Source: Octopus bimaculoides (Eukaryota). Taken from it: a stretch of DNA of 40,167 nt. Numbering within the stretch: the stretch's first letter is position 1; every line of letters starts with the position of its first letter. Shown one piece after another: positions 3,176 to 34,901 of this stretch. The notes under the pieces are model-generated. The model saw only the letters and a list, made by a program, of their open reading frames with translations. It was not told the origin of the DNA and searched no databases. The DNA lies in assembly GCF_001194135.2 (NCBI RefSeq), contig NC_068986.1, forward strand, positions 38,666,683 to 38,706,849, written 5' to 3'. The position numbers and the translations under genes were made by a program.

Positions 3176-4295
3176 ACATATGAATCTATGTGCCATTGCG
3201 TGTTTGTGCACATATGTATACTTGCAAACATTCAATGCATGCATATGCGTATGAGTGAGTACATAGATGCATATTTTGAAAGAGAATAAGAGAGAGTGAG
3301 AAAGAAGGAAAGCAAGGGAGGGTTAAAGTTGAAGAATATTATAATTTGTTATAATAACTGTCAACACTTCAACACCGACCTTCTCTCTTTATTAATTAAT
3401 TTTTTTTTCTTTTTGCTGGATTATTGCTGCAGATGTTATTATTTTAATTTACTATTTTTTTATAGGCCAGGAGAACCAGAACTAGCAGCAGAAGCAGTTA
3501 TAAGCAGTAAGAACCAGTTAAGAAGAACTAGGCCAGGAAGGGTGAAGTATTTGTGAAGAGGGTATTAGAAGTGAGAAATCAGATTGACCTTTGGTTTAAT
3601 AGAGAAACAAATCAGGCCAACAAAACACAGCAGGTGATAAAAATCTTTCTTCAACAACACCTGTTGGTTTTGCATTAGATATTTTAATGATAAACAATTT
3701 TTACTTAAATCTTGTTAGTTTGGTTGCTGTTGGTGGATTTTTTGTTTGTTTGTTTTTTTGTGTTTTATTTTTGTTGTTGTTATGAAAATTCATTTTGATG
3801 TGCATGAAAACATGCACACACTGCAAATACATGCAGACAGACATATGACCATGACTGAGAAGCTTGAATAACAATCTTTTATTGTAGCCTTGGGTGAATC
3901 ACTTTTGTGAGTAGATTTGGTGAATCAAAACTGAAAGGAACTTAACGTGTGTTTGTGTGTCTGTGTATTGTATATGTGTCTGCATTGGTATGTATGTATG
4001 TGTGTGTCTGTGTGTGCGTACACACGTGTGTGTGCGTACACACGTGTGTGTGCATGCGTGTGTATATATATATATATATATATATANNNNNNNNNNNNNN
4101 NNNNNNNNNNNNNNNNNNNNNNNNNNNNNNNNNNNNNNNNNNNNNNNNNNNNNNNNNNNNNNNNNNNNNNNNNNNNNNNNNNNNNNNNNNNNNNNNNNNN
4201 NNNNNNNNNNNNNNNNNNNNNNNNNNNNNNNNNNNNNNNNNNNNNNNNNNNNNNNNNNNNNNNNNATATATATACATATATACATATATATATAT

Positions 4296-4477
4296 AAAGA
4301 AAATGGAGAGTTTGAACAGAGCAAAATCAGTTTATTTGTATAATAGTCAATTTCATATTCTGTTCTCATATATCGAATAGATGAAAACGTCTATAAATTA
4401 ATTGAAATAGGGATAAACCGATGGACGCTTGAATGTAAGACATCCCTAGAAAGTGCAATTTCTTTCTATACAAAACT
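4296..4477. repeat. Interspersed repeat copy 1 (segments A 4296-4357 and B 4358-4477), probably a Penelope-like 3' end on the minus strand
   Basis: A matches the reverse complement of 6319-6380 (about 6 mismatches in 62). B matches 6398-6513 directly (about 83 percent). The Penelope assignment is only by resemblance of the AT-tailed end. Confidence 0.7.
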
Positions 4478-4744
4478 TCATAAACACTTGTTAAGCACTT
4501 CCACCAGCAAAATGGAGAGAATAGAAAGAGAAATATCAATGAAAGGCATTCCTATTCATGAAGGACCTAATAGAAAAAACAACGGAGTTGATTCACAGAC
4601 TCAGATGGGGAGCATTGTACTATGTACACATGCTGCCATTCAGTCTGTAGTGAACACTACATCTACTAGGATGTAACATGAATGTGTCAGTTTTTGCCCT
4701 GAAGAGATTTTTACCTTCTGAATTCCCAATGCAATTCTTAATCG

Positions 4745-4912
4745 CAAAATATGAATCATCATCATCATCATCGTTTAACGTCCGCTTTCCATGGTAGCAT
4801 GGGTTGGACGACTTGACTGAGGACTGGTGAAACCGGATGGCAACACCAGGCTCCAATCTAAATTTGGCAGAGTTTCTACAGCTGGATGCCCTTCCTAACG
4901 CCAACCACTCAG
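4745..4912 (-). mobile_element. Family D retroposon tail, young copy
   Basis: (ATC)n followed by a near-exact reverse complement of 14730-14880. Confidence 0.8.
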
Positions 4913-5594
4913 ATATATATATATATATATATATANNNNNNNNNNNNNNNNNNNNNNNNNNATATATAGATATATATATTTTTTTTAAAGATGCTAGGGT
5001 GGGGGTATGATTCGAGGGAGGATTTGGCTGCTATTTATTTATTTATTTATTTTTACATAGCAGGTCGAGGGGCCACGTAGCAGAAGAGAGTCCATGTTGA
5101 CCTACGGTTAATAATAAAAGTCACATTGCGAATGACAGATGGAATATAAAAAAAATNNNNNNNNNNNNNNNNNNNNNNNNNNNNNNNNNNNNNNNNNNNN
5201 NNNNNNNNNNNNNNNNNNNNNNNNNNNNNNNNNNNNNNNNNNNNNNNNNNNNNNNNNNNNNNNNNNNNNNNNNNNNNNNNNNNNNNNNNNNNNNNNNNNN
5301 NNNNNNNNNNNNNNNNNNNNNNNNNNNNNNNNNNNNNNNNNNNNNNNNNNNNNNNNNNNNNNNNNNNNNNNNNNNNNNNNNNNNNNNNNNNNNNNNNNNN
5401 NNNNNNNNNNNNNNNNNNNNNNNNNNNNNNNNNNNNNNNNNNNNNNNNNNNNNNNNNNNNNNNNNNNNNNNNNNNNNNNNNNNNNNNNNNNNNNNNNNNN
5501 NNNNNNNNNNNNNNNNNNNNNNNNNNNNNNNNNNNNNNNNNNNNNNNNNNNNNNNNNNNNNNNNNNNNNNNNNNNNNNNNNNNNNNNNNNNNNN

Positions 5595-6284
5595 CCTCTT
5601 TGTTGAATTACTGCTGTGTTTGTCCTTTCTCATCTGACTCTTCTCTTTCTTCGGTGGTGGGGCAAACTGTTGAGAATTCTGTTGAACGACGTGGGTGTTC
5701 AGTCGCGGTTTTGGGCTAAGAGAAGTACATTCATCATCTGAGGAATCGGTCCACTCATACAGTTTGGCACTGGTAGGTGTCAGGTGAGACTTTCGTTTTT
5801 TGATGATGCCGGATTCTTTATCATTCGATGTGTCAGTACATTCAGCTGGTTTCTCATTTGACATGCTTAAAGAGGATTTTTTGGGTCTGTCTTTTGTAGT
5901 TGCAGATTTTTTTGTCTCTGGATTTTCTTTTCGTTTTGTGTGGTGGTCACCATCTCACAGGGAGCCGGAATACAGGGACTGGTTGAGATGGGGACTCGGT
6001 GGCGAATAGCTTAGAGCAGGATTATGTCTTGAATGCACTGTGGCCACTGATTTCGGTGAGACTTGTCATTCCCATATGGTTTTCTGAGCCTGTAGCACCT
6101 GCCCCAACGACCTTGTGATTGTACTGTCGTGGAATCTTGTTGAAGTACCTTTACGTACGTCACACATTTCACATTTGTAAGCCTCGGGAGAATTTCGGTA
6201 AGTACACACACTGCAGTCCCAGTAACCCTCGTCAGGGGCCTTAGAGTGTCGTTTGGACCTACTTGTCCCCCGCTTGTCTTCCAT
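5595..6284 (-). pseudogene. RYBP/YAF2: RYBP/YAF2-family processed copy: RanBP2-type zinc finger, 141-codon insert with two TGA codons, then KPRLN segment; C-terminus falls in the gap
   Basis: [50 protein letters not shown] matches the RYBP/YAF2 N-terminus (W-x-C-x2-C-x3-N-x6-C-x2-C). KPRLNTHVVQQNSQQFAPPPKKEK..STKR matches the next conserved block. All of 6284-5595 is one frame, with stops only at 6068-6066 and 5957-5955. There is no intron at TSR|SKR, where vertebrate genes have one. Confidence 0.85.
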
Positions 6285-6318
6285 TAATGAAGGTAGATAT
6301 TGAAATGCGCATAGGCAT

Positions 6319-6513
6319 TATGAAATTGACTATTACATAAATAAATTGATTTTGCTGTGTTCAAGCTCTCCAGTTTCTTTATATTATATTACTAAAATTC
6401 TGTTCTCATCAAATAGATGAAAACATCTGTAAATTAATTAATATAGAAATAAACTGGTAGACACTTGGATGTAAGACATGTCTAGAAAGAGCAATTTCTT
6501 GCTATACAAAACT
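6319..6513. repeat. Interspersed repeat copy 2 with segment A inverted relative to segment B
   Basis: 6319-6380 is the reverse complement of 4296-4357. A 17-nt AT spacer follows. 6398-6513 is a direct copy of 4358-4477. Confidence 0.8.
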
Positions 6514-7337
6514 ACACACTCACACACACACACACACACACACACACNNNNNNNNNNNNNNNNNNNNNNNNNNNNNNNNNNNNNNNNNNNNNNNNNNNNN
6601 NNNNNNNNNNNNNNNNNNNNNNNNNNNNNNNNNNNNNNNNNNNNNNNNNNNNNNNNNNNNNNNNNNNNNNNNNNNNNNNNNNNNNNNNNNNNNNNNNNNN
6701 NNNNNNNNNNNNNNNNNNNNNNNNNNNNNNNNNNNNNNNNNNNNNNNNNNNNNNNNNNNNNNNNNNNNNNNNNNNNNNNNNNNNNNNNNNNNNNNNNNNN
6801 NNNNNNNNNNNNNNNNNNNNNNNNNNNNNNNNNNNNNNNNNNNNNNNNNNNNNNNNNNNNNNNNNNNNNNNNNNNNNNNNNNNNNNNNNNNNNNNNNNNN
6901 NNNNNNNNNNNNNNNNNNNNNNNNNNNNNNNNNNNNNNNNNNNNNNNNNNNNNNNNNNNNNNNNNNNNNNNNNNNNNNNNNNNNNNNNNNNNNNNNNNNN
7001 NNNNNNNNNNNNNNNNNNNNNNNNNNNNNNNNNNNNNNNNNNNNNNNNNNNNNNNNNNNNNNNNNNNNNNNNNNNNNNNNNNNNNNNNNNNNNNNNNNNN
7101 NNNNNNNNNNNNNNNNNNNNNNNNNNNNNNNNNNNNNNNNNNNNNNNNNNNNNNNNNNNNNNNNNNNNNNNNNNNNNNNNNNNNNNNNNNNNNNNNNNNN
7201 NNNNNNNNNNNNNNNNNNNNNNNNNNNNNNNNNNNNNNNNNNNNNNNNNNNNNNNNNNNNNNNNNNNNNNNNNNNNNNNNNNNNNNNNNNNNNNNNNNNN
7301 NNNNNNNNNNNNNNNNNNNNNNNNNNNNNNNNNNNNN

Positions 7338-9587: not shown

Positions 9588-10759
9588 ATATAGTTTGTAT
9601 TGAAACTGAATAAATTGAAATGTCTTAGATTCACCTCTGTACTATTTCCACCTCCATCTTTTATACATATGTGTATATGNNNNNNNNNNNNNNNNNNNNN
9701 NNNNNNNNNNNNNNNNNNNNNNNNNNNNNNNNNNNNNNNNNNNNNNNNNNNNNNNNNNNNNNNNNNNNNNNNNNNNNNNNNNNNNNNNNNNNNNNNNNNN
9801 NNNNNNNNNNNNNNNNNNNNNNNNNNNNNNNNNNNNNNNNNNNNNNNNNNNNNNNNNNNNNNNNNNNNNNNNNNNNNNNNNNNNNNNNNNNNNNNNNNNN
9901 NNNNNNNNNNNNNNNNNNNNNNNNNNNNNNNNNNNNNNATAAACATAAAATATATATATATACATACATAAATACACTACAGTAAATTTCTCATTAAGCT
10001 GTGTACAATCCCATCAAATTGGATATCAGATAAACCCAAAAAAGAACAGTGTTGGCAGAGTTAAGGGAATGCCTCTTAGTGTTGACTTCCCCTGCCAAAC
10101 TTGAGTATCAGTGTTATAGGGTATATATATTTTAGATGTGCTGAGTTCGTACTGCATGCCCATCAAAATTAGTAGTTTCATCATAAACACTAAACCCATT
10201 CAGTAACATAATCATTAATTGTAACAGTAAGCTAACATTTTCTATCCTTGTTATGAAACAATGCAGTCATTGTTTTGAAGTAGTACTCCACATCCTACAG
10301 ATAATTGTACCAGGATATGTATTGGGCAAGTGGTAAGATAATCAGAGAGTGACAAGAATAAAGGCCCAAAACAAACAACTTTTCACTAGTCACACATCCT
10401 GTTAATTATTTATTTTTATATCCCTCTCTAAGAAATGCTCCTTTTCTATCCAGCATTCCATTCTCTTCTCTAACTAGCCTCTTAATTCACTTATTGCTCT
10501 ATATACTCAGAGAAGTGCAAATATAAATAAACACACAGACACATATATCCAACTTGCCCTCCCCTCATCATCATTGTCATCATCATCATTTAACATCTGT
10601 GTTCCATATTGCCTAGGGCTGGATGGTTTAACAGGATCCTATGACTTCAAGGACTGTATCATGCTTAAGTATTTGCTTGGCATAGCTTCTACAGCTGGAT
10701 GCCCTCCTTAATGCCAACCACTTAACAGTTACTGAATCAGGAGAGATGGTGTTCTCCAT

Positions 10760-10925
10760 TTGAACAAAAGAAACTTATTTGTGTGCTTGCATTTGTTAAG
10801 AATTTCAGATCTAGAATCAAGTTGTGTGATGGATTCTTGATGCAAGTTATGCATAGCTGGAAGATCACACAGTCTTTTTAGGTCCAAGAATTCCATGATA
10901 CTACTTAATTCCAGATCCAAACTTT
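10760..10925 (-). mobile_element. Penelope-like element, GIY-YIG region C-terminal remnant
   Basis: ..KRLCDL..NLHQESITQLDSRSEILNKCKHTNKFLL resembles the characteristic PLE terminus LNxRSEIxxKCRHxNKFLL. Confidence 0.75.
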
Positions 10926-11250: not shown

Positions 11251-11414
11251 AGAAACTTGCTTCCCAGCCACATGGTTCTGGATTCAGTCCTACTGCATGG
11301 CACCTTGGGCAAGTGTCTTCTACTAAGTCTCGGGCCAACCAAAGCCTTGTGAGTGGATTTGGTAGATAGAAATTGAAAGAAGCTTGTCCTATATACATAC
11401 ATATATATATATAC

Positions 11415-14479: not shown

Positions 14480-14912
14480 ACGAAACTCGGCTTCCGAAGA
14501 CCTGTTGAGGCAAGCGAAAGTGAAATCGTGATGGCACCTGTGCTGAGCGTCGCCTTCCTCGCACTTGTGCCGGTGGCACGTATAAAGACATTTGAGCGAG
14601 ATCGTTGCCTGTGCCGCTGGACTGGCTCCTGTGCAGGTGGCACGTAAAATACACCATTTTGAGTGTGGCCGTTGCCAGTACCACCTGTCTGGCCTTCGTG
14701 CCGGTGGCATGTAAAAGCACCCACTACACTCTCGGAGTGGTTGGCGTTAGGAAGGGCATCCAGCTGTAGAAACTCTGCCAAATCAGATTGGAGCCTGGTG
14801 TAGCCATCTGGTTCACCAGTCCTCAGTCAAATCGTCCAACCCATGCTAGCATGGAAAGCGGACGTTAAGCGATGATGATGATGGTGATGATGATGATGAT
14901 GATGATGATGAT
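14480..14912 (+). mobile_element. Family D retroposon, long CpG-rich young copy with three ~65-bp internal repeats
   Basis: GTGC(C/A)GGTGGCA(C/T)GTA(A/T)AA occurs near 14567, 14631 and 14698, followed by the family D tail and (GAT)n. Confidence 0.75.
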
Positions 14913-19664: not shown

Positions 19665-20062
19665 TACTCTCTTTTATTTGTTTCAGTCATTTGACTGTGG
19701 CCATGCTGGAGCACTGCCTTTAGTCGAGCAAATCGACCCCAGGACTTATTCTTTGTAAGCCTAGTACTTATTCTATTGATCTCTTTTGCCGAACCACTTA
19801 GTTACGGGGATGTAAACACACCAGCATCGGTTGTCAAGCAATGTTGGGGGTACAAACACAGACACACAAACATATACACACACACATNNNNNNNNNNNNN
19901 NNNNNNNNNNNNNNNNNNNNNNNNNNNNNNNNNNNNNNNNNNNNNNNNNNNNNNNNNNNNNNNNNNNNNNNNNNNNNNNNNNNNNNNNNNNNNGCAGTGG
20001 GACTGAACCTAGAACCATGTGGTTGGTTAGCAAGCTACTTACCACACAGCCGCTCCTATGCC
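19665..20062 (-). mobile_element. SINE family A, full length, with an N gap in the internal microsatellite
   Basis: Tail at 19665-19860 and head at 19994-20062, both close to the 31298-31674 copy. Confidence 0.85.
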
Positions 20063-21028
20063 TATGCTGACTGTGTTTGAATTTTTCTTTCTCTCCCTCC
20101 CTCTCTCTCTATTCCACTACTAAAAACAAAATGGTGAAAGGAAAGAAAAAGAAGTAAAGAGATCTACTAAAAGAAGAAAAAAAAGAGAATTCGATACCAC
20201 AGGAATCTATTTTCAAATTTATTTTATTTTTCACTGATGTCTCTGTTTTTACTGATACTACATCATTTTAGCTTTCTGTCTTTCTCTATTTGCGTTTTTT
20301 TTTTTTGAGGGGGAGGTGACTTGAGAGAAATTTAGCTGCTATTTCTCAAAATAATGTCATACAAATTCCCTTGTGAATTGGTGAAAAATAATGTATATGG
20401 TTTCATTAAGAAGGTTCTGGATACAAACTACACACACACACACATAGAACACTACCCATTTATATATAGAGATTACATAAATAGTATTATAGTTATTTAA
20501 CAATGTCAGCAGTTATCATCAATATGACATGTTATCTTTTCGTGACATTACCTGGCCACTAGAGAAAACAGAATCCAAGGAAATTAAGGATGTTCTGCAT
20601 TACAGAAGAACTATTTAGTAAAGTTTATGAATTTAGATAAATTTGCATTCCTTAGAAGAGAATAATGACATTTTGGGCAGGTAAAGCTCTTTATTAAATA
20701 GCTGTTTTTTTACTCTCACACAGAGCTTATGCATCAATGGAAATAGCATTACACGAATTGATGTCATAGCAATACACACTGAGACACAGAAATACTCCAA
20801 TGACAGACAAATGAAAAGACTTAAAATGAAATGTATCCGACTACAAACTCTACTTAGAATCTTAGTTTATGAATTTTGAAATTTTCATTTATTATATGTT
20901 GCTTTTCTCTCAATAGCCTCAGCTGTCAAGAATTAGGTGAGCTTAGATGTAGAGGAAAGTGATGGCAAATCTCTTTATCTCTGGGATTTCCACTTCTAAG
21001 TCCAGCATTGGGGGTAAAATCTTTAACT

Positions 21029-24109: not shown

Positions 24110-24865
24110 TAATGTCACCTGTAACAGTTGCCAAGTTACCTGTCACCCACTTAACCTGTCAACCAGTTGCCTTGTCACCAAATTGTCATGTCACTCAATT
24201 ATCCTGTCACCCAGTTATAGCATTGCCCAGTTATCCTGTCACCCAGTTGTTTAGTTACCCAACTGTCATATCACCCACTTATCTTGTTACCCAGTTGTCA
24301 TGTCACCCAATTGTCATGTCACCCAGTTGTCATGTCACCTAGTCATCCTATCACCCAGATGTCTAGTTATCTAATTATCATGTCACCCACTTATTTCATC
24401 ACCCAGTTGTCCTATCACCCAGTTGTCCAATCACCCAGATATCCAATCACTCAGTTGTCCTATCATCCAGTTATCCAATCACCCAGTTGTCCTATCATCC
24501 AGCTGTTTTATCACCCAATTCTCATGTCACCCAATTGTCCTATAACCCAGTTGTCCAGTTACCTAGTTGTCTTGTCAGCTGTCTATTATCCAATTGTTAT
24601 GTCACCCAATTGTCGTGTCACCCAACTGCCTTGTCATCTAATTGTCGATCACCCAGTTATCCTGTCACTCAGTTATATTATCAACCAATTGCCCTGTCAC
24701 TTAGTTGGCTATCACCCAGTTGTCTGTCACCCAGTTATCCTGTCACCTAGTTATCCTGTCACCCAGAAGTCATATCACCCAATTGTTTATCACCTAGTCA
24801 TACTGTCACCTACTTGTCCTATCTTCAAGCTATCCTGCCATCTGGTTGTCTATTACCCAGCTGTC
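24110..24865. repeat. Degenerate minisatellite, about 750 bp, core (T)GTCACCCAGTTGTC(A/C)T, unit about 16-21 nt
   Basis: Dozens of TCACCCA(G/A)TT(G/A)TC variants, for example GTCACCCAATTGTCAT GTCACCCAGTTGTCAT at about 24302-24333. Confidence 0.9.
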
Positions 24866-29100: not shown

Positions 29101-29497
29101 TTCTTTTATTTGTTTCAGTCATTTGACTGCGGCCATGCTAAAGCACCACCTTTAGTTGAGCAATCGATCCCAGGACTTATTCTTTGTAAGCTTAGTACTT
29201 ATTCTATCGGTCTCTCTTGCCGTACCACTAAGTGACAGGGACATAAACACACCAGCATTGGTTGCCAAGCAATGTTGGTGGGACAAACACAGATGCACAA
29301 ACATATACGTACACATACGTATATATATATATATATGACGGGCTTCTTTCAGTTTCCTTCTACCAAATCCACTCACAAGGTTTTGGTTGGCCCAAGGCTA
29401 TAGTAGAAGACACTTGCCCAACAGGCCACACAGTGGGAGTGAACCCAGAACCATGTGGTTGGTAAGCAAGCTACTTACCACACAGCCACTCCTGCAC
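29101..29497 (-). mobile_element. SINE family A, full length
   Basis: Complete head, (TA)n spacer and tail in reverse complement. Confidence 0.88.
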
Positions 29498-30906: not shown

Positions 30907-31297
30907 ATTTAACAGGTGGTCTAAATTCTCTCTTGGTTTTACTACTGAATCCTGTATACCATTATATAACATATGTTGCATGTTCACTTGTGGAAATGAT
31001 ACAAGAAATGAACCTCAAAAGTAACAGTGGGACTTTATTCCTCCGTTAAGTAGTACACTGGAACAATTACAAACATCATGAATTTTGGTGGTTGTATAGT
31101 TCATCCATTTTTTGGATAATTCAGCTCGAGCCATCATTGGTTATATGTGCTCTATTATATTAATTTTACTCTGATGAATAATAGCAGGAAAACAATATGA
31201 CTTGTCTTCGTGAAAATCTCTTACCCCTCTGGGCTCAATAATTTGTTAAATGAATTTATAGAAAAAAGGTAAGCTCCAGAGCACATACCAATTAGTT

Positions 31298-31486
31298 AGT
31301 CATTTGACTGTGGCCATGCTGGAGCACCACCTTTAGTCAAGCAAATCGACCCCAGGACTTATTCTTTGTAAGCCTAGTACTTATTCTATCAGCCTCTTTT
31401 GCTGAACCGCTCAGTTACGGGGACGTAAACACACCAGCATCGGTTGTCAAGTGATGTTGGGGGGGGGGACAAACACAGACACACAA

Positions 31487-31517
<31 letters not shown>

Positions 31518-31674
31518 CAACGGGCTTCTTTCAGTTTCCGTCTACCAAATCCACTCACAAGGCTTTGGTCGGCCCGAGGCTACAGTAGAAGACACTTGCC
31601 CAAGGTGCCACGCAGTGAGACTGAACACGGAACCATGTGGTTGGTAAGCAAGCTACTTACCACACAGCCACTCC
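31298..31674 (-). mobile_element. SINE family A, full length, best-preserved copy
   Basis: Head TGGCTGTGTGGTAAGTAGCTTGCTTACCAACCACATGGTTCC on the minus strand, (TA)n spacer and complete tail. Many CpGs are retained. Confidence 0.9.
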
Positions 31675-31890
31675 AACACCTATTGTTTGAGAATTATTAC
31701 ATGCAACATGATTGGATCTTTGATCCAAATCCCATGCAATACTCAACCAATTTAAACACAGGACTCAACCAATATTCAAGACTCACATGATAGGTAAAGT
31801 GACTGATCATTACAGATTAACACCCTGAGCTTATATCAGTTTAAAGAAAGTATTCACTATACCATAACAGAAATTGGTCTCACTAGAACC

Positions 31891-33395: not shown

Positions 33396-33430
<35 letters not shown>

Positions 33431-33452
33431 TAGATATATAGATATATATATA

Positions 33453-33610
33453 CAACGGGCTTTTTTTCAGTTTCCATCTACCAAATCCACTCACAAGGCT
33501 TTGGTTGGCTTGAGACTATAGTTGAAGACACTTGCTCAAGGTGTCATGCTGTGGAACTGAACCTAGAACAATATGGTTGGGAAGCAAGCTTCTTACTACA
33601 CAGCCATACC
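33453..33610 (-). mobile_element. SINE family A head
   Basis: Reverse complement of the head through ..GGATTTGGTAGATGGAAACTGAAAAAAAGCCCGTTG. Confidence 0.8.
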
Positions 33611-34901
33611 TACATATATGTGTGATATATATGTGCACGTCTGTAACAGCAAAGGCAATGCTTTCCGACTAGAGACCATCTATACCCTGACACGAGAAGG
33701 ATGGCCCAATTTCCTCTGACATAGAATTTTTCCTGAGAACATCCTAATCTCTGCTGCTAGTGAGGGGCTGGAATTACATTTTAGAAGCATGGTAAGATTT
33801 TGTAGGACCAATGCACAGGAGAAGAGGATGCAAAAGATTCAAAACCTTGCTCAGATATTTCCACTACCTGTTAACAAGTAGTGGCAGGATTTCAAAAATA
33901 ATCACTGCGGTCATGGAGAAACCTTGTCAAATCATCCAGGTCATATCTAGGCAGAGTTTTGTTTGACCAAAACGTCCTACACATCCTTTGAACAATCTCC
34001 ACTATCTGGTTAGGGACAGTGCAGGAGGTTCACAATTCTAACTGGTCAGCAACACAGACGACAAATTTATGATATGCATGATTGACTAAGGACCCACAGA
34101 CAATAACTATTTGCTGGAAGCTGACTGTGTCTAGACTGGTGCACAAACACTACAGGGATTGGAGTAGTGAATTAGTTAAGCAGCAGCCGACAGAGTCATC
34201 ATCAACAACTGATGGTGGGGTGCCCTCAAAATGTTGATGCAATCAGAATTGATTGTGCTTAGTAATGAGCTTGTGTTGGAGCAAAGTAGATTGAAGGGGA
34301 GAGCTAGTTAGCAACAGAAGAGGCAACTAATAAAAGCATTACATCCAATACACCAGCAATGAGAATGATTCCCAATCATTTCACCAATGCAAACTATGAA
34401 GGTAACATTTGTCAGAGCTAGGGCACAAGCACTAAAACATGAGGGAACAAAAGCTGTTTTATAAACTTGTGTGGCAGAGTTACATGTGGCAACAAAACCA
34501 CAATTCAGTCTTTGGTGGACCAGGACAAGTACGAACTTCTCAGGTTCAAGTACAGGTGACAGCTTTCTAGCAGCACTTTGCTTGATTTTTAAGGTAGGCC
34601 AGTGATTGAAGACAGTCGAGAAATTTAGTACCTACCTATGTATCACAGCTTTCAACAGAAGTCACGCGATACTGCAAAAAGCAAACAATAACAGTTGTAA
34701 TACAGGAAATGGATCAGCTGCACGAGGTGCAAATCACGTGGTTCAGTTTTATGTATTCAAACTAGACTTGTTTGGCAACTTCTTAGCAGATGTCATTCAC
34801 AACTGGTAACAGAATGGGAGAATTCCCGGTATTGTAAACCAGGAAGTGATAACACAAACAATACACACACACACACACACACACACAAAAAACATGCATA
34901 A

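Follow-up and report, generated by a model that had tools for sequence, protein, structure and literature searches.

Our data place the RYBP/YAF2-like sequence on the minus strand at 6284 to 5595 of the window (that is, the whole 40,167-nt stretch of Octopus bimaculoides DNA that was analyzed) with high confidence among young processed pseudogenes, its source being the octopus RYBP/YAF2 gene and, more specifically, the longest splice isoform of that gene. The 423 nt that separate its zinc finger from the remainder of the reading frame were not inserted into the copy; rather, they represent six consecutive coding exons of the parent, E3 to E8, situated in an ancestral intron past the zinc-finger exon. 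Introns are absent from the copy at the exact exon junctions, and there is a separate, intron-containing parent locus. The assignment to the class of processed pseudogenes is supported by these fused exons and by the parent locus; a poly(A) tract and a 3' target-site duplication would lie in an assembly gap.

By translation, the RYBP/YAF2 reading frame begins with MEDKRG..., is extended by an insert of 141 codons, and continues in an unchanged frame as KPRLNTHVVQQNSQQFAPPPKKEK... (the frame resumed past the insert reads KPRLNTHVVQQNSQQFAPPPKKEKSQMRKDKHSSNSTKR), running up to an assembly gap at 5594. The insert comprises exactly 423 in-frame bases, 6135 to 5713, between ...GTSTR and KPRLN..., and the copy contains two in-frame TGA codons, at codon 73 (6068 to 6066) and codon 110 (5957 to 5955). 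No frameshift is found over the 690 nt, and the ATG and the zinc finger are intact. The latter is a RanBP2/NZF zinc finger (Pfam PF00641; E = 8e-10; residues 19 to 42), and the best protein matches of the copy are all YAF2 or RYBP. Translation of the minus strand thus confirmed, to the base, the coordinates, frame, insert length, and stop positions given in the original prediction. Threading the exon boundaries of the cuttlefish gene (transcript L012 on genomic locus L011) through the alignment to the window yielded the following map.

6259 to 6284, minus strand: coding part of E1, 26 nt, encoding MEDKRGTS plus the first 2 nt of an Arg codon; fused to E2; placed by alignment with cuttlefish L012
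6136 to 6258, minus strand: E2, 123 nt, the RanBP2/NZF zinc finger; its last residues are ...KGTSTR, the Arg codon being split in phase 2 after AG
6112 to 6135, minus strand: E3, a 24-nt micro-exon encoding FHDSTITR; the Sepia exon is at L011 68022 to 68045, AG/GT-bounded; alternative in cuttlefish, where it reads FHDTTITR
6028 to 6111, minus strand: E4, 84 nt, with the first TGA at 6068 to 6066, AGA (Arg) in cuttlefish; the Sepia exon is at L011 81854 to 81937
5932 to 6027, minus strand: E5, 96 nt, with the second TGA at 5957 to 5955; a skipped cassette of 93 nt in cuttlefish, with one extra codon here
5887 to 5931, minus strand: E6, 45 nt, equivalent to octopus L013 4426 to 4470, AG/GT-bounded, with 0 differences
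5800 to 5886, minus strand: E7, 87 nt, equivalent to L013 5625 to 5711, AG/GT-bounded, with 0 differences
5713 to 5799, minus strand: E8, 87 nt, equivalent to L013 6303 to 6389, AG/GT-bounded, with one difference, at 5741
5595 to 5712, minus strand: E9 (KPRLNTHVVQQNSQQFAPPPKKEK...), 118 nt, ended by the gap; 126 nt in cuttlefish
5157 to 5594, no strand: assembly gap of 438 N, expected to hide the last 8 nt of E9, E10 (with the YAF2_RYBP domain), and the start of the 3' UTR

All eight junctions from E1|E2 to E8|E9 are fused in the window, matching the cuttlefish gene at L011, and it is on these grounds that we regard the copy as cDNA-like. The ends of the insert coincide to the base with the start of E3 and the end of E8, a coincidence far beyond chance. 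From ...DEGYW to ...GTSTR, the zinc finger has the same amino acids as in cuttlefish, the differences being mostly synonymous. The junctions E5|E6, E6|E7, and E7|E8, as well as the outer ends of E5 and E8, furthermore match AG/GT-bounded exons of the octopus locus L013.

The window is gap-rich draft sequence, AT-rich and repeat-rich, and the copy sits on a 953-base contig with N runs on either side (5157 to 5594 and 6548 to 7337). Besides the copy, this contig has 263 nt that are AT-rich and not RYBP; within them lie a (GT)n tract and a repeat found again 2 kb away, on the neighboring contig. The 3' part of the copy is absent because the contig is bounded by the gap at 5157 to 5594; the RING1B-binding YAF2_RYBP domain (PF17219) is present in the last exon of the parent (protein model P0130) and in the cuttlefish proteins, its counterpart in the copy falling within that gap. 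A tblastn search for E10-like sequence elsewhere in the window found none, and the remaining RYBP exons were likewise absent; nor did the window past the gap match the parent 3' UTR, L013 being mostly N in that part. At the other end, the 5' limit of the copy lies somewhere within 6284 to 6318, and the sequence upstream of its ATG did not align with the GC-rich cuttlefish 5' UTR; probably, either truncation left the 5' end of the copy close to the start codon or divergence has made the UTRs unrecognizable. An exact-sequence look-up of the 72-aa open reading frame of the window returned no record.

A repeat brackets the pseudogene, with 4357 to 4487 matching 6397 to 6523 in direct orientation (83%) and 4286 to 4357 matching 6319 to 6389 in inverted orientation (90%); no other copies occur in the window. 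The two flanking segments (4286 to 4487 and 6319 to 6523) are not a target-site duplication, being 83 to 90% identical, partly inverted, and too diverged and long, and may instead have come about by local duplication accompanied by a small inversion, or be a rare element present twice.

The existence of a second, parental locus, as the original prediction anticipated, was confirmed by a protein search that combined E9 of the window with the last exon of cuttlefish. The match, annotated as YY1-associated factor 2-like [Octopus bimaculoides] (P0130), lies on scaffold LGKD02014783.1 of assembly GCA_001194135.2 (stretch L013), where the following exons could be assigned.

L013 476 to 571: parent E5, AG/GT-bounded, with a pyrimidine tract before the AG
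L013 4426 to 4470: parent E6, AG/GT-bounded, with a pyrimidine tract before the AG
L013 5625 to 5711: parent E7, AG/GT-bounded, with a pyrimidine tract before the AG
L013 6303 to 6389: parent E8, AG/GT-bounded, with a pyrimidine tract before the AG
L013 about 10652 to 10865: homology to E10, with the splice site taken from the alignment

The boundaries of octopus E5 to E8 equal, to the base, those transferred from cuttlefish, and E9 of the parent is probably hidden inside an N gap at L013 6617 to 9482. The comparison with the parent covers E5 to E8, with E1 to E4 lying >10 kb upstream of the P0130 model. Hence, the expectation that the insert would resolve at the parent into separate AG/GT-bounded exons held for E5 to E8, although the number of exons is six and not the two that had been proposed. 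Outside the copy, the flanks of the window share with L013 only dispersed repeat families, at 76 to 97% identity, from which it follows that the two are different loci, in one genome or in two very closely related ones. Having its exon junctions fused and an intron-containing parent at L013, the copy is, as originally proposed, a retrocopy of a spliced RYBP/YAF2 mRNA.

Over E5 to E8, the window and the octopus parent differ at 4 of 315 positions (1.3%; 98.7% identical), as follows.

6022: window A, parent G; E5; Asn versus Ser, cuttlefish having the residue of the parent
6003: window G, parent A; E5, position 25; synonymous (TCA>TCG), with A or G among cuttlefish transcripts
5957: window T, parent C; E5; TGA versus CGA, with AAA (Lys) in cuttlefish
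5741: window T, parent C; E8; Ser versus Pro, cuttlefish having the residue of the parent

As the missense sites are parent-like in cuttlefish and the stop site is sense there, these four differences most likely arose in the copy. At 6003, a genomic A in the parent and a G in the retrocopy have the direction expected had an A-to-I-edited mRNA been copied, but one site proves nothing.

The cuttlefish gene provided us with the exon structure needed to read the insert. When the full conceptual translation served as protein query, hundreds of YAF2/RYBP proteins were matched by the zinc finger only, and two clusters, represented by P0001 (341 aa, 77% identity) and P0002 (310 aa), spanned 100% of the query including the insert. 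Numerous sequencing runs contributed the short spliced contigs behind these clusters (L001 to L010), and the clusters also contain the NCBI entries named RYBP [Acanthosepion (Sepia) pharaonis], CAE1253801.1 (P0121, 349 aa) and CAE1253803.1 (P0127, 318 aa). The term unannotated, as applied to the extra exons by the original prediction, is accordingly inaccurate for Sepia pharaonis, where they are annotated in these entries, and apt for the octopus, where the models P0130 and P0129 are fragmentary or artifactual. The cuttlefish proteins have no stops across the insert and fall into four forms according to the presence or absence of FHDTTITR (8 aa) and of a block of 31 aa. Aligned to the S. pharaonis locus L011 (118 kb, no N), transcript L012 resolves into ten exons over ~98 kb, and every junction is GT-AG with a polypyrimidine tract. 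The zinc-finger exon E2 ends ...ACG AG|gtaagt, and E9 starts with the final base of the interrupted codon, followed by AAA CCC AGA (KPR).

The six cuttlefish exons between them (E3, 24 nt; E4, 84 nt; E5, 93 nt; E6, 45 nt; E7, 87 nt; E8, 87 nt) are all multiples of three, all in phase 2, and stop-free, so that any of them can be skipped without a change of frame. E3 is included in isoforms P0121, P0123, and P0124 and skipped in P0001 and P0126, and E5 is skipped in P0002, P0127, and P0128; these two exons are the two blocks that vary between cuttlefish isoforms, while none of the ten isoform sequences seen lacks E4. The proposal of extra exons at the conserved splice junction past TSTR, some of them alternative, was thus borne out by the cuttlefish cassettes E3 and E5. 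Two other readings of these blocks were considered and rejected: the 24 nt past TSTR are the conserved micro-exon E3 and not a local tandem duplication (ACTTCAACAAG versus ACAATCACAAG), and the 93-nt cassette of cuttlefish is a separate genomic exon and not an exitron within one exon.

The cuttlefish open reading frames (L001 to L012) carry 47 extra residues before the conserved ATG (MVVRVAGH...KRAS-MDEKRG), read through the GC-rich 5' UTR, and this upstream extension is shared by the NCBI models P0121 and P0127. The 47-residue N-terminal extension of cuttlefish RYBP is probably not real protein.

Comparing the window with cuttlefish, we found synonymous sites to be near saturation (pS of about 0.65 to 0.79), while pN reached only 0.03 for the zinc-finger exons, 0.11 for the insert, and 0.09 for E9. 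The pN/pS of the insert (0.18) and the bias toward third positions (33/17/102 differences at codon positions one, two, and three, respectively) argue that, through most of its history, the insert was coding sequence under constraint. Judged from these substitution patterns, E3 to E8 were coding and under purifying selection through almost all of the time that separates octopus and cuttlefish. The two exons that bear stops in the window, E4 and E5, likewise retain conserved residues, and their substitutions are biased toward third positions. Such constraint is the opposite of what is expected of a poison exon or of junk, and its persistence nearly throughout shows that the copy is young relative to the octopus-cuttlefish split.

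At the second stop, the parent has CTG CGA GAT (Arg) and the window CTG TGA GAT; because the parent reads CGA, this TGA (5957 to 5955) is derived, a CpG transition (C>T) having produced it in the copy. For the first stop, where the window has GAA TGA CAA and cuttlefish GAA AGA CAG, we infer from the cuttlefish codon that it is derived as well, and a CGA at this codon of the octopus parent would make it another CpG transition. A genomic premature stop is absent from E5 of the parent (CGA) and from both E4 (AGA) and E5 (AAA) of cuttlefish. The two TGAs thus look essentially like ordinary pseudogene decay, an outcome which the original prediction had foreseen as evidence against itself but had tied to one continuous stop-free exon, in place of which the parent has several.

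What that prediction had favored was that the copy records a stop-bearing poison exon, implying NMD control of RYBP and PRC1 levels, alongside a coding cassette. Like known poison exons, those of the insert are frame-neutral, so that skipping is tolerated, and lie between constitutive exons; E5 is moreover a true cassette, skipped in some cuttlefish transcripts, and the octopus comparison covers E5 to E8. However, the CGA of the parent refutes the proposal for E5, the AGA found in every cuttlefish isoform observed makes it unlikely for E4, and both exons, with their conserved residues and third-position bias, behave as protein-coding sequence. The proposed division of the insert into 180 and 243 nt at 5956/5955, despite an arithmetically true TG|A join, falls inside E5 (6027 to 5932) and corresponds to no exon boundary. 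Overall, we consider a poison exon highly improbable. Equally improbable to us is a functional retrogene that is expressed and in which read-through or A-to-I editing (UGA to UGG) overcomes the UGAs. A-to-I editing is pervasive in coleoid cephalopods, the 690 nt contain no frameshift, the ATG and zinc finger are intact, and a public gene model, P0129, exists on the locus. Yet that model, predicted ab initio, avoids both stops by splicing and has its end in a dispersed repeat. Of the four differences from the parent, three alter the protein (the stop, Ser>Asn, and Pro>Ser), which is the pattern of neutral decay, and editing would yield Trp where the relatives have Arg or Lys. The absence of frameshifts fits a very young pseudogene and is not by itself proof of lost function. 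Taking the residual form of these two ideas, in which either the E4 stop is also present in the octopus parent as a skippable stop exon or the retrocopy is transcribed and its UGAs are recoded by A-to-I editing, we assign it a slim chance; a recoded retrocopy, if true, would supply a second, intronless RYBP-like protein.

The position of the copy on a 953-base contig flanked by N runs raises the possibility of an assembly artifact, that is, a cDNA-derived or misjoined contig placed between two gaps. This we hold to be very unlikely, given that the contig holds 263 nt of local non-RYBP sequence with a repeat shared by the neighboring contig and that cDNA contamination from the same animal would show neither the 4/315 differences nor the two stops. 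A retained or unconventional intron (non-GT-AG or U12), or a transposon within an RYBP copy, might be suggested by the coincidence of the insert with a conserved splice junction. Here the original prediction had correctly excluded a retained GT-AG intron: the insert starts ATTCCACG and has no GT, and no one-base shift gives GT-AG, GC-AG, or AT-AC. It starts ATTCC (or TTCC) and ends CCCA (or CCCAA), and no shift of its boundaries produces intron termini. There is no second copy of the insert in the window, and an exhaustive profile search gave nothing outside the cephalopod RYBP cluster. Exon by exon, moreover, the 423 nt show homology to RYBP coding exons of cuttlefish and octopus, which refutes both ideas and leaves them practically no probability.

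We return, then, to a processed pseudogene of the octopus gene. In this scenario, a spliced mRNA of the longest isoform, extending from E1 to at least E9 and including the micro-exon E3 and the cassette E5, would have been reverse transcribed in the germ line, and the cDNA would have been inserted at an unrelated, repeat-rich site. The product suggests L1/LINE-type target-primed reverse transcription as the mechanism. After insertion, the copy would have accumulated about 1.3% substitutions, including two nonsense mutations, at least one of them a CGA>TGA CpG transition. So low a divergence would suggest that the insertion is recent and possibly confined to the species or genus. It shares with other processed pseudogenes made by LINE reverse transcriptase the loss of introns at exact junctions, a separate multi-exon parent, unrelated flanks, premature stops, low divergence from the parent, and the preservation of one splice isoform, and it differs in that the poly(A) tract and target-site duplications fall within an assembly gap and that the 5' end seems to lie near the start codon. 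Most likely, the copy encodes nothing. As a pseudogene it is ordinary in kind and matters little, and our literature search found nothing specific on cephalopod retrocopies.

The copy nevertheless has consequences for annotation, since public octopus gene models are incorrect or incomplete at the pseudogene as well as at the parent locus. P0129 (111 aa, metaclust) is reproduced exactly by joining 6275 to 6149, 5737 to 5612, and 4857 to about 4778 on the minus strand; these joins use chance GT/AG sites, skip both stops, and take the last exon from a dispersed repeat, and the model is an ab initio annotation artifact on the pseudogene. P0130 (188 aa, L013 10001 to 10865) contains only the true last exon (PPRLKNIDRSS...VDNN), the ~118 residues before it being apparently spurious; E5 to E8 lie just upstream, outside the model, where the scaffold is about half N. 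A 50-aa UniRef entry, P0122, equals the first 50 residues of the window copy and ends in TSTR, although an exact-sequence look-up of it returned no record. Such an end is expected from read-through of the E2 donor (AG|GTAA giving Arg-stop, as in cuttlefish), and it hints that P0122 may be a model on the true E1 and E2 of the octopus gene. As a record of the longest octopus RYBP/YAF2 mRNA (E1 to E9 with the 24-nt micro-exon), the copy could guide re-annotation.

Several other features of the window were noted. SINE-like repeats of one or two families, with 76 to 92% identity to L013, occur at 554 to 723, 1526 to 1620, 11251 to 11408, and 19994 to 20064, with further copies at 29101 to 29497, 31296 to 31683, 33416 to 33618, and other positions, and a second repeat family (4755 to 4935 and 14737 to 14888) is 92 to 97% identical to L013 2483 to 2662; these shared families speak for an octopus origin of the window. 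On the plus strand, two overlapping open reading frames in different frames at 1511 to 2225 resemble a decayed Tc1/mariner-type transposase, the Pfam support being a weak HTH_Tnp_Tc3_2 match only (E = 0.003, below the curated cut-off); apart from this weak Tc3-type transposase helix-turn-helix, a Pfam search of the other long open reading frames of the window gave nothing significant. A degenerate 16-nt tandem array at 24139 to 24820 (about 43 copies, 68% matches, consensus CCTGTCACCCAGTTGT) yields a 205-aa pseudo-open reading frame that repeats S-P-x-C/Y-P-I-T-Q-L, and is probably a minisatellite, not a gene.

With respect to the gene itself, the octopus and cuttlefish sequences share with RYBP/YAF2 of other animals, which are variant PRC1 subunits, the same NZF ending in KGTSTR, followed by KPRxN..QQxxQQFAPPPKKEK, and the C-terminal YAF2_RYBP domain (PF17219) common to the parent and the cuttlefish protein. 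In gastropod, bivalve, annelid, echinoderm, insect, and vertebrate RYBP/YAF2, TSTR is directly joined to KPR, whereas the cephalopod gene has ~140 extra residues, in six extra exons, at this junction. When 1.84 billion cluster representatives were searched exhaustively with HMMER, a profile of the insert by itself recovered the cuttlefish cluster and nothing else; outside cephalopod RYBP, the block thus has no detectable relatives. It is on this search that the claim of no further homologue rests and not on the word-index protein searches, which are lossy (the first missed P0129, and the second gave only P0002 and P0129, missing P0001) and in which absences are weak.

Predicted isoforms of vertebrate YAF2 (P0027 from snake, P0037 from koala, and P0044 from mouse) also carry extra in-frame sequence exactly between KGTSTR and KPR. 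These inserts are unrelated to the cephalopod sequence and each is limited to a narrow lineage, while the cephalopod block consists of six exons, is common to octopus and cuttlefish, and is under purifying selection. From these comparisons, the phase-2 intron past KGTSTR seems to have gained optional exons repeatedly and may be prone to acquiring them.

The block E3 to E8 is probably carried by coleoid cephalopods in general, and in the literature searched we found no paper on RYBP or YAF2 in octopus or on the six-exon module. This module of ~140 residues, with its two optional exons, looks like a coleoid innovation in a core PRC1 subunit, a reading that we find far likelier than a recoded retrocopy or a stop in E4 of the parent. 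Its modest interest lies in the presence, in octopus and cuttlefish, of a lineage-restricted, constrained, and alternatively spliced block of 140 residues in an otherwise conserved Polycomb subunit.
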